From: Tubulanus polymorphus | Lineage: Eukaryota; Animalia; Nemertea | Direction of reading: 5' to 3' | Assembly: GCF_964204645.1 (NCBI RefSeq) | Contig: NC_134034.1 | Span: 14,001,910-14,065,909 of the forward strand | DNA: 64,000 nucleotides | Part shown: positions 62,337 through 64,000 of the stretch, piece by piece | Layout: the number at the start of each line of letters is the position of its first letter | Numbering within the stretch: position 1 is the first letter of the stretch | Notes under the pieces: generated by a model | What the model was told of the DNA's origin: nothing | Databases searched by the model: none | The model's input: the letters and a program-made list of their open reading frames with translations, nothing else | Made by a program: the position numbers and the translations under genes

Positions 62337-62487
62337 GGGTTAGGGTTAGGGTTAGGGTTAGGGTTAGGGTTAGGGTTAGGGTTAGGGTTAGGGTTAGGGT
62401 TAGGGTTAGGGTTAGGGTTAGGGTTAGGGTTAGGGTAGGGTTAGGGTTAGGGTTAGGGTTAGGGTTAGGGTTAGGGTTAGGGTTAGG
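62337..62487 (+). repeat. (TTAGGG)n telomeric tract, proximal
   Basis: About 25 TTAGGG units with one TAGGG variant. Confidence 0.98.
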
Positions 62488-62684
62488 TTTAGAGGTATAG
62501 GTTAGGGGAACCAATCAGAGTATCAATTAATGTTTTTGTGTTCTTCAGATTAACCCACCACAATTAATCGAGAGTAATTAACTGATATCTTTTCAGAACC
62601 CCACTGTGACACTGGCAGCGGGAAAGCCGGCTAACTCCACCTGCCGGAAGGTATTAGAGTTAGGGATACCGAAAAGCAATCCAC

Positions 62685-62757
62685 CACCTAGACCGGGACT
62701 CGAACACCGGACCTTTCGTTTGCCGGACGACTGCTCTACCGATTGAGCTACCTGGGC
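62685..62757 (-). tRNA. tRNA-like sequence (GGC in loop, Ala-like; probably pseudo/TE-borne)
   Basis: GCCCAGGTAGCTCAATCGGTAGAGCAGTCGTCCGGCAAACGAAAGGTCCGGTGTTCGAGTCCCGGTCTAGGTG; perfect D stem, A and B boxes; C33, one acceptor mismatch, T-stem bulge. Confidence 0.7.
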
Positions 62758-63022
62758 GGACCGACGATTGCTCTCGGTTTCACCTCTATATCTCCGCACT
62801 TTCCTGGCACTGGTCGGGGTTAGGTTTAGAGGTATAGGTTAGGGGAACCAATCAGAGTATCAATTAATGTTTTTTGTGTTCTTCAGATTAACCCACCACA
62901 ATTAATCGAGAGTAATTAACTGATATCTTTTCAGAACCCCACTGTGACACTGGCAGCGGGAAAGCCGGCTAACTCCACCTGCCGGAAGGTATTAGAGTTA
63001 GGGATACCGAAAAGCAATCCAC

Positions 63023-63095
63023 CACCTAGACCGGGACTCGAACACCGGACCTTTCGTTTGCCGGACGACTGCTCTACCGATTGAGCTACCTGGGC
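63023..63095 (-). tRNA. tRNA-like sequence, copy 2
   Basis: Identical to 62685-62757. Confidence 0.7.
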
Positions 63096-63359
63096 GGACC
63101 GACGATTGCTCTCGGTTTCACCTCTATATCTCCGCACTTTCCTGGCACTGGTCGGGGTTAGGTTTAGAGGTATAGGTTAGGGGAACCAATCAGAGTATCA
63201 ATTAATGTTTTTGTGTTCTTCAGATTAACCCACCACAATTAATCGAGAGTAATTAACTGATATCTTTTCAGAACCCCACTGTGACACTGGCAGCGGGAAA
63301 GCCGGCTAACTCCACCTGCCGGAAGGTATTAGAGTTAGGGATACCGAAAAGCAATCCAC

Positions 63360-63432
63360 CACCTAGACCGGGACTCGAACACCGGACCTTTCGTTTGCCG
63401 GACGACTGCTCTACCGATTGAGCTACCTGGGC
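63360..63432 (-). tRNA. tRNA-like sequence, copy 3
   Basis: Identical to 62685-62757. Confidence 0.7.
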
Positions 63433-63696
63433 GGACCGACGATTGCTCTCGGTTTCACCTCTATATCTCCGCACTTTCCTGGCACTGGTCGGGGTTAGGT
63501 TTAGAGGTATAGGTTAGGGGAACCAATCAGAGTATCAATTAATGTTTTTGTGTTCTTCAGATTAACCCACCACAATTAATCGAGAGTAATTAACTGATAT
63601 CTTTTCAGAACCCCACTGTGACACTGGCAGCGGGAAAGCCGGCTAACTCCACCTGCCGGAAGGTATTAGAGTTAGGGATACCGAAAAGCAATCCAC

Positions 63697-63769
63697 CACC
63701 TAGACCGGGACTCGAACACCGGACCTTTCGTTTGCCGGACGACTGCTCTACCGATTGAGCTACCTGGGC
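63697..63769 (-). tRNA. tRNA-like sequence, copy 4
   Basis: Identical to 62685-62757. Confidence 0.7.
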
Positions 63770-63922
63770 GGACCGACGATTGCTCTCGGTTTCACCTCTA
63801 TATCTCCGCACTTTCCTGGCACTGGTCGGGGTTAGGTTTAGAGGTATAGGTTAGGGGAACCAATCAGAGTATCAATTAATGTTTTTGTGTTCTTCAGATT
63901 AACCCACCACAATTAATCGAGA

Positions 63923-64000
63923 GTTAGGGTTAGGGTTAGGGTTAGGGTTAGGGTTAGGGTTAGGGTTAGGGTTAGGGTTAGGGTTAGGGTAGGGTTAGGG
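63923..64000 (+). repeat. (TTAGGG)n terminal telomeric tract
   Basis: TTAGGG run to the window end, G-strand pointing outward. Confidence 0.98.

Follow-up and report, generated by a model that had tools for sequence, protein, structure and literature searches.

Tandem arrays within telomeres of the nemertean Tubulanus polymorphus consist of a 337-bp non-coding unit that contains a tRNA-like module and shares its end signals with a Penelope-like element

Penelope-like elements (PLEs) are the closest relatives of telomerase, and the accepted rule, to our knowledge, is that only those PLEs which lack an endonuclease live at telomeres. Such endonuclease-deficient elements, Athena and Coprina, together with the Terminons, have been described in rotifers, fungi and protists (PMC8557442; PMC3846280). 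Their 3' end is oriented toward the centromere and carries a reverse-complement telomere stretch at its terminus, their variable 5' truncations are capped by telomere repeats, and successive elements are stacked between telomere tracts. A second group of relatives, the metazoan retrozymes without long terminal repeats (LTRs), consists of 150-450-bp tandems with type I hammerheads and circular RNA, and its members have been proposed to be non-autonomous PLE derivatives (PMC7229834; bioRxiv 10.64898/2026.07.22.740005). Here, we describe a system from the nemertean Tubulanus polymorphus in which the same orientation, 3'-terminal telomere stretch, capped truncations and stacking are also seen. It was found in a window of 64,000 nucleotides (the whole stretch of DNA analysed, C10:14001910-14065909 of the 268-Mb assembly), at the distal end of which about 4.3 head-to-tail copies of a 337-bp non-coding unit lie between two tracts of TTAGGG repeats. 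This unit is probably a non-autonomous retroelement which depends on a telomere-seeking PLE and which has been reverse-transcribed from a telomeric 3' end that telomerase then recapped.

The layout read by the original prediction, a TTAGGG tract followed by some 4.3 copies of the unit and by TTAGGG repeats again, was confirmed by the sequence and by Tandem Repeats Finder (TRF), which places the array at 62480-63924 (score 2881, 99% matches). The proximal telomere tract on the plus strand (62337-62487) comprises ~150 bp of (TTAGGG)n with one TAGGG variant, and the array starts, as had been claimed, at a 30-nt variant telomere tract belonging to the unit, which overlaps the proximal tract by GGGTTAGG, the last letters of the latter being common to the first unit. 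Four full copies follow on the plus strand, the element sense being the minus strand. Copies 1 (62480-62816), 3 (63155-63491) and 4 (63492-63828) are identical at 337 bp, and copy 2 (62817-63154, 338 bp) differs by one extra T in a T-run at unit position 53, the single-letter difference noticed earlier. The fifth copy (63829-63924, plus strand) consists of the first 96 nt only, which makes it 5'-truncated in element sense; it is cut at unit position 96 (GAGAGT) and continues as TAGGG repeats in the distal telomere tract (63923-64000, plus strand), which caps the truncated copy, extends over only 78 bp in the assembly and ends with the contig.

Read 5' to 3' in the sense of the element RNA, the unit comprises an end motif, a 58-nt leader, a tRNA-like module, a box shared with the PLE, an AU-rich hairpin and a tail, all on the minus strand of the window. 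The 5'-terminal motif of copy 1 (62803-62810), in sense GTGCCAGG, is common to the 337-bp unit, to a 353-bp sister unit and to the full-length PLE, and lies 7-9 nt from every full-length joint. At the opposite end, the tail (62480-62509 in copy 1, and present at the start of every copy) comprises the complement of ~1.5 telomere repeats together with a variant stretch, and its counterparts in the 353-bp sister and the PLE match it at 87-93% identity. The 24-nt box (62599-62622) is shared with the 3' untranslated region of the PLE; the 353-bp unit matches the PLE there at 96% over 24 nt (E 1.8e-6). The tRNA-like module was detected by the Rfam covariance model (RF00005) in each full unit, at 62685-62757 in copy 1 and at 63023-63095, 63360-63432 and 63697-63769 in copies 2-4, scoring 43 bits (threshold 29, E 1.2e-6) in the array and 43-47 bits across the array and the PLE-bearing chromosome end. 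Its A and B boxes are intact, and it has a C at anticodon-loop position 33, a bulged T stem and an acceptor-stem mismatch. The claim that the unit bears a tRNA holds to this extent, with the qualification that the module reads as a degenerate tRNA because ARAGORN calls no tRNA in the array, Rfam alone detecting it. Most likely, the module would act as an internal RNA polymerase III promoter, and a T4 run 9 nt downstream of it (62672-62675), kept in the 353-bp family, is a possible terminator for the same polymerase. Between the 337- and 353-bp families, identity amounts to 93% in the module, 87% in the tail and 82% in the box region, as against 55-63% in the leader and the AU-rich hairpin, and the module and end signals are therefore regarded as the conserved parts. 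This organization recalls tRNA-derived short interspersed elements (SINEs), which are likewise non-coding, contain a tRNA-related module with A and B boxes and take their 3' tail from an autonomous partner. Unlike in these SINEs, the partner is a PLE rather than a long interspersed element, the module is preceded by the 58-nt leader and followed by the T4 run, and the copies are mostly tandem and telomeric instead of dispersed single insertions.

Besides the tails of the two units, a third type is found on a 6.35-kb element with two open reading frames (ORFs), which is complete at the left end of C10 and of which the window contains no copy. Its ORF1 product (518 aa) gives a weak, sub-threshold match to GDSL lipases (E 0.015), and PF13472 itself is recognised in ORF1 of relatives at 49% identity; GDS, GINN and DGIHW motifs can be read in ORF1 (L032:3697-5253). 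The ORF2 product (766 aa) matches RVT_1 (E 1.5e-7) and GIY-YIG (E 3.3e-4), with the endonuclease motifs GIY, CxxC, YVG, R, E and N readable. Its best database match is a 96%-identical protein from Tubulanus polymorphus, thousands of relatives at 40-60% identity share its domains, and homologues carry PF01541. With a reverse transcriptase (RT), a C-terminal GIY-YIG domain with a CCHH motif, and partial copies in tandem and inverted arrangement, the element has the canonical traits of its class and, judged by its sequence, is an ordinary endonuclease-bearing PLE. Its 3' end consists of the box, a short hairpin and the telomere-complementary tail, and it shares with the 337- and 353-bp units the tail (90-93%), the 24-nt box (96%, 353-bp unit) and the 5'-terminal GTGCCAGG. 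The PLE is stacked at the same chromosome ends as the two units, and about 24 PLE-type tails, out of 178 intact tails, occur at dispersed internal sites. Two ~250-bp repeats, 80% identical to each other, lie in the PLE 5' untranslated region (L032:1784-2029 and 2066-2321), and each includes an antisense stretch that resembles a tRNA T arm (GGGACTCGAACCC).

The telomere-directed 3' end also occurs outside this element. A PLE from another public sample (ERR10705268), 61% identical in the ORF2 protein, has the same box, hairpin and tail, followed by (TAACCC)n at a contig end (L045:2940-3036), and the stems of its hairpin differ in sequence, the pairing being retained by compensating changes. Relatives at 49% and 41% identity have the same combination of a GDSL ORF1 and an RT/GIY-YIG ORF2, and the telomere-complementary tail was absent from those examined. 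With the tail found at 61% and not at 49% or 41% identity, the habit of seeking telomeres would seem to have been derived within a single PLE sub-lineage. Unlike Athena and Coprina, the partner described here keeps its GIY-YIG endonuclease and has dispersed internal copies, no hammerhead was found beside the tail (Rfam, E up to 1), and what forms the arrays is a non-coding unit of 337 bp that contains a tRNA-like module. With an endonuclease present and no hammerhead found, two defining features of Athena and Coprina are therefore missing from a system that otherwise behaves as they do.

The distribution of the family was established by a DNA search of the whole assembly, complemented by local BLAST on chromosome and contig ends and by pattern searches. 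The 337-bp unit, in forms of 337 and 335 bp, was found at C10 left, C10 right (the window), C32, C7, C9 and C65 and at one internal C4 site, and the 353-bp sister, 80% identical to it, at C10 left, C8, C66, C34 and C16. Polarity is constant: contig starts carry the units on the minus strand and contig ends on the plus strand. As a result, it is always the antisense of the tRNA-like module that runs into the G-rich telomere strand. In the two unit families, the first unit begins at unit position 1, directly on TTAGGG, at each of the 11 joints between telomere and tail. A genome-wide pattern search returned 48 telomere-to-tail joints, of which 37 had the tail of the PLE and 5 and 6 those of the 337- and 353-bp units, respectively, and the reversed control pattern returned none in the genome. 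The far ends, by comparison, vary: TTAGGG-capped ends lie at unit positions 96, 318 and 29 in the 337-bp family and at about 261, 235 and 310 in the 353-bp family. Where a contig runs to its end, the telomere caps reach 1.3-2.9 kb. The expectations attached to the original prediction, that arrays would occur at other chromosome ends, always start at the tract and end at variable points, were thus borne out genome-wide, and this telomeric spread, together with the PLE end signals, supports its view of the unit as a small non-coding telomere-resident retroelement. At C32, a five-unit array is followed by four TTAGGG repeats, a ~40-bp fragment of another tail-bearing element and a 1.3-kb terminal telomere (L034:7364-7430).

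Fixed-orientation retroelements which live in or form telomeres are also known from the silkworm (TRAS/SART) and Drosophila (HeT-A/TART/TAHRE), in both cases telomeric non-LTR retrotransposons (PMC4700185, PMC5537684). In contrast to the 337-bp unit, these belong to another RT class, are poly(A)-tailed and protein-coding and have no telomere-complementary tail; in contrast to both groups, telomerase repeats are clearly still added here. For the present system, the following sequence of events is proposed. The 3' end of the telomeric G strand, for which we favour the overhang of the chromosome end over an endonuclease nick, would pair with the tail of the element, and the PLE reverse transcriptase would extend the chromosome strand along the element RNA (window minus strand). 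Several exact units would result from a template longer than one unit, whether a multimer transcribed from an array already present, a circle of RNA or one RNA used repeatedly; synthesis would stop at a random point, in this case at unit position 96, and telomerase would recap the end. The original prediction had likewise envisaged a start where the tract can pair with the telomeric G-strand 3' end, a variable cut-off and recapping, and the joints support these steps. Priming from the telomere is further supported at C10 left, where a PLE copy without its 3' half meets telomere repeats exactly at the internal CCTAA of the intact copy; a telomeric 3' end therefore seems to have paired with this internal match and primed there.

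The same priming could start at a nick. Cleavage of the G strand by the GIY-YIG endonuclease within a duplex telomere tract would also prime at the tail, in which case the array would be an insertion comparable to those of TRAS/SART, not an extension of the end. We regard this as somewhat unlikely, giving it more weight than the other alternatives considered below. The ORF2 endonuclease motifs look intact, PLE-type tails (the ~24 mentioned above) are dispersed internally, as are unit copies on C4, C5 and C6, and eight of 11 distal joints begin in the same repeat phase (TAGGG), as a fixed cleavage site could yield. A fixed starting phase is, however, equally given by telomerase adding repeats to a non-telomeric end, and a target-site duplication cannot be read within a repeat. 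We lean towards priming at the end on account of tract lengths: nine of 12 internal telomere tracts measure 150 bp or less (13 to 150 bp), as compared with 1.3-2.9 kb for the three terminal tracts. Were insertion random within long tracts, proximal pieces this short would be rare; addition at ends that were short or had just been recapped would give them.

The manner in which units are joined bears on the length of the template. Joints in which a full-length 5' end runs directly into a tail numbered 106 in a pattern search, and each was within one family (PLE-PLE with a period of 6354 bp, 337-337 or 353-353); joints between different tail families numbered zero, though the three families adjoin on the same ends. 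Jumps between separate RNAs should have mixed the families, and the observation argues for a template effectively longer than one unit, such as a tandem transcript, a circular RNA or a re-used RNA. PLEs are known to sit in tandems or partial tandems, and their reverse transcription can start inside an RNA (PMC11167929). A model in which growth proceeds one unit at a time, with monomer RNA copied to its 5' end before the enzyme jumps to the tail of another RNA, would have in its favour the defined 5' end motif common to the PLE and both units, the G residues in which the cDNA of that end finishes and which could pair with the extreme 3' CCCC of the tail, and a joint at C10:1473 that links the PLE 5' end to a different-bodied element with the same tail type. 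Against the absence of any mixed joint and of any pile-up of far ends at the full-length position, we consider this model distinctly unlikely.

A rolling-circle template has been proposed for the retrozymes as tandem non-coding PLE relatives (PMC7229834; bioRxiv 10.64898/2026.07.22.740005). The unit resembles them in size, low G+C content, exact head-to-tail arrays and kinship with PLE untranslated ends, as well as in the rolling-circle or multimeric template invoked. It differs in having a tRNA-like module in place of a ribozyme and in being seeded on telomere repeats via its tail. A search of the array and the PLE-bearing end gave no known ribozyme (hammerhead, twister, HDV-like or other) at Rfam E up to 1, a search that minimal variants could escape; a CUGAAGA string in the unit stands without helix II or GAAA context. 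The rolling-circle geometry of the original prediction thus stands in part. An endless template, circular or multimeric, fits the same-family joints and is reasonable with RNA and a PLE enzyme, and a circular form is possible; the circle itself had been taken for the one-LTR circle of a terminal-repeat retrotransposon in miniature, and this part had to be abandoned. The unit contains no LTR pair, primer-binding site, polypurine tract or internal long direct repeat, and its ends match those of the PLE. Anatomically, it contains a whole tRNA-like cloverleaf in sense orientation and no site complementary to a tRNA, and a miniature LTR element was rejected on these grounds.

Arrays may also be built at the DNA level. 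Yeast Y' elements include subtelomeric short tandems interleaved with telomere repeats, and circles can template telomere extension in yeast; these systems operate by DNA recombination. Unlike in Y' arrays, the units here are joined directly, with no telomere repeats intervening, and bear the end signals of a retroelement. Rolling-circle synthesis on a 337-bp DNA circle, which a telomere end would invade at the telomere-like tract, or break-induced replication or unequal exchange between chromosome ends could account for the arrays, with reverse transcription needed at most for the first copy. Units are near-identical within an array and their joints strictly same-family, copy number differs between the assembly (~43) and another individual (~110-130), and the arrays of C7 and the window both comprise four full units plus 95-96 nt (95 nt at C7, 96 in the window), although their flanks differ. 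The last similarity hints at copying between ends or at a stop hot spot; nevertheless, in three of the four units the two arrays show 3-4 differences. Such an explanation would leave unaccounted for the 6.35-kb PLE, which follows the same rules, its internal CCTAA-primed copy, the internal insertions with an inverted truncated copy, and the switch from a PLE ORF into the unit at C65, and we judge it unlikely. The 335- and 337-bp forms differ at positions 308-309 and 318-319, variants too few to place template switches within arrays. Break points recur near unit position 92-97, at CGAGAG, namely at the far end in the window (63920-63924), at the C7 contig end (L035:5013-5017), at the start of the C4 inverted copy (L036:4447-4515) and at both ends of the C5 permuted copy (L043, about 3840-3850). 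One possible cause is preferential stopping or cleavage at this point, the foot of a conserved GATTAA/TTAATC hairpin; another is that one chromosome end was copied onto the next.

Evidence of mobility comes from copies outside the standard telomeric setting. The C4 internal copy comprises 1.12 units and an adjacent inverted 5'-truncated copy, the C5 internal copy is a permuted partial tandem, and structures of this kind have been described for PLE insertions (PMC8557442). On C6, a solo unit copy is found without the telomere-like part of its tail, and on C3 an old copy is seeded on degenerate telomere repeats, with a short telomere stretch as cap. At C65 (L037:8750-8830), a 26-unit array begins off telomere repeats, inside antisense PLE ORF1; the switch into the unit coincides with the 5' boundary of the tRNA-like module and involves an overlap of 2-4 nt, as would be expected of a template switch. 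The same position is where a cut by RNase P would leave an RNA 3' end.

Independent support was obtained from an Illumina run of another sample of the same species, which, together with contigs of three runs, was mapped on 63560-63948. Unit depth was 800-1000 at ~7.2-fold genome coverage, which suggests the ~110-130 unit copies given above for this individual. Support for the 337-bp tandem joint came from 489 reads and for the junction between TTAGGG and unit position 1 from 32. In a few reads, a unit breaks off at position 247 or 286, and a short run of telomere sequence separates it from the beginning of another unit. Full-length joints show that the element does not begin with the tRNA-like module; in this individual, a minority of copies end 7-8 nt upstream of the module, at unit position 286 (window 63777), and some such ends run straight into the next unit. 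Position 286 is where RNA polymerase III would be expected to start, which we grade as a small lead, short of a result.

One correction concerns the position of the array in the assembly. A 100-N gap (L031:3911-4010) directly follows the last base of the window, and the C10 scaffold continues for a further 235 kb, so the array marks a contig end that was scaffolded inward, rather than a scaffold end. The telomere-ended contig of C7 is likewise followed by a 200-N gap (L035:5018-5217) and another 49 kb of scaffold. The terminal telomere-ended pieces on C10 and C7 have probably been misplaced by scaffolding. On the proximal side, the flank (61495-62336, minus strand) consists of fragments of an LTR-type retroelement, with a gag-like zinc knuckle and an aspartyl protease recognised by Pfam and sequence reading (Asp_protease_2 at 61495-61764, minus strand, E 5.9e-4). 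Telomere repeats abut this debris without a spacer at 62336/62337, as at a healed break. Elsewhere in the window, an integrase core fragment lies on the plus strand of the subtelomeric flank (58690-59025), and an ORF of 303 aa (52035-52946) encodes a U1-type zinc finger (E 1.2e-4) unrelated to the array. The contig end beside a scaffold gap, and the fact that tandem repeats are common near telomeres, could suggest an ordinary subtelomeric satellite or an assembly chimera devoid of mobile-element biology. This is hardly credible, given that the same architecture recurs at at least 10 independent contig ends, that the start register is fixed in 11 of 11 cases, that the end signals are shared with an RT-encoding element and that the tandem and telomere-to-unit joints are confirmed in independent raw reads. 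A pure satellite or assembly artefact was rejected on the multi-end architecture, the fixed register, the junctions and the independent reads.

Several observations weigh against a PLE-dependent reverse-transcribed origin of the unit, or against details of it. While the layout of the arrays, their presence at many ends, the end signals in common with the PLE and the restriction of unit joints to one family can be read directly, the RNA template, its strand and its multimeric or circular forms are deduced from genomic DNA, and the copying enzyme, the choice between overhang and nick and the role of the tRNA-like module are likewise inferred. The apparently intact PLE endonuclease and the dispersed tails mean that a nick in duplex telomere DNA could prime synthesis, and unequal exchange or break-induced copying could expand or move existing arrays without reverse transcription; the likeness of the C7 and window arrays hints at such copying or at a stop hot spot. 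Should the T4 run after the tRNA-like module terminate efficiently, transcription by RNA polymerase III would be cut short, and the full-length 5' end 58 nt upstream of the module is unlike the start of a textbook tRNA-derived SINE. Lastly, predicted folds were no stabler than shuffled sequence for the 3' domain (z -0.58), the PLE 3' end (z -1.54) and the tRNA-like module (z +0.75), so that we propose no structure on energy grounds.

No description of such a system was found in the literature searched, which covered PLE, SINE/tRNA, nemertean and telomeric retrozyme topics. New here are the genome-wide junction census, the same-family joint rule, the internal insertions pointing to mobility, the tract-length argument and the read support. 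The biological interest is that many telomeres of an animal that still uses TTAGGG repeats contain a small non-coding passenger in which a tRNA-like module is combined with end signals from a PLE that bears an endonuclease. This provides a tractable case of telomerase and a retroelement competing or co-operating at the same 3' end, with clear test substrates in a 337-nt RNA and a telomeric primer, and extends the link between retrozyme-like tandems and PLEs to ribozyme-free elements. A bolder version, which at present we hold to be rather improbable, would make the unit a ribozyme-free counterpart of the retrozymes, in which host enzymes of tRNA biology, acting on the tRNA-like module (synthesis by RNA polymerase III, cutting by RNase P), produce defined or circular templates and a telomerase-related RT copies them onto chromosome ends by rolling circle. 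If this were true, a tRNA-tagged parasite RNA would serve as a second regular template for telomere extension beside that of telomerase in an animal.

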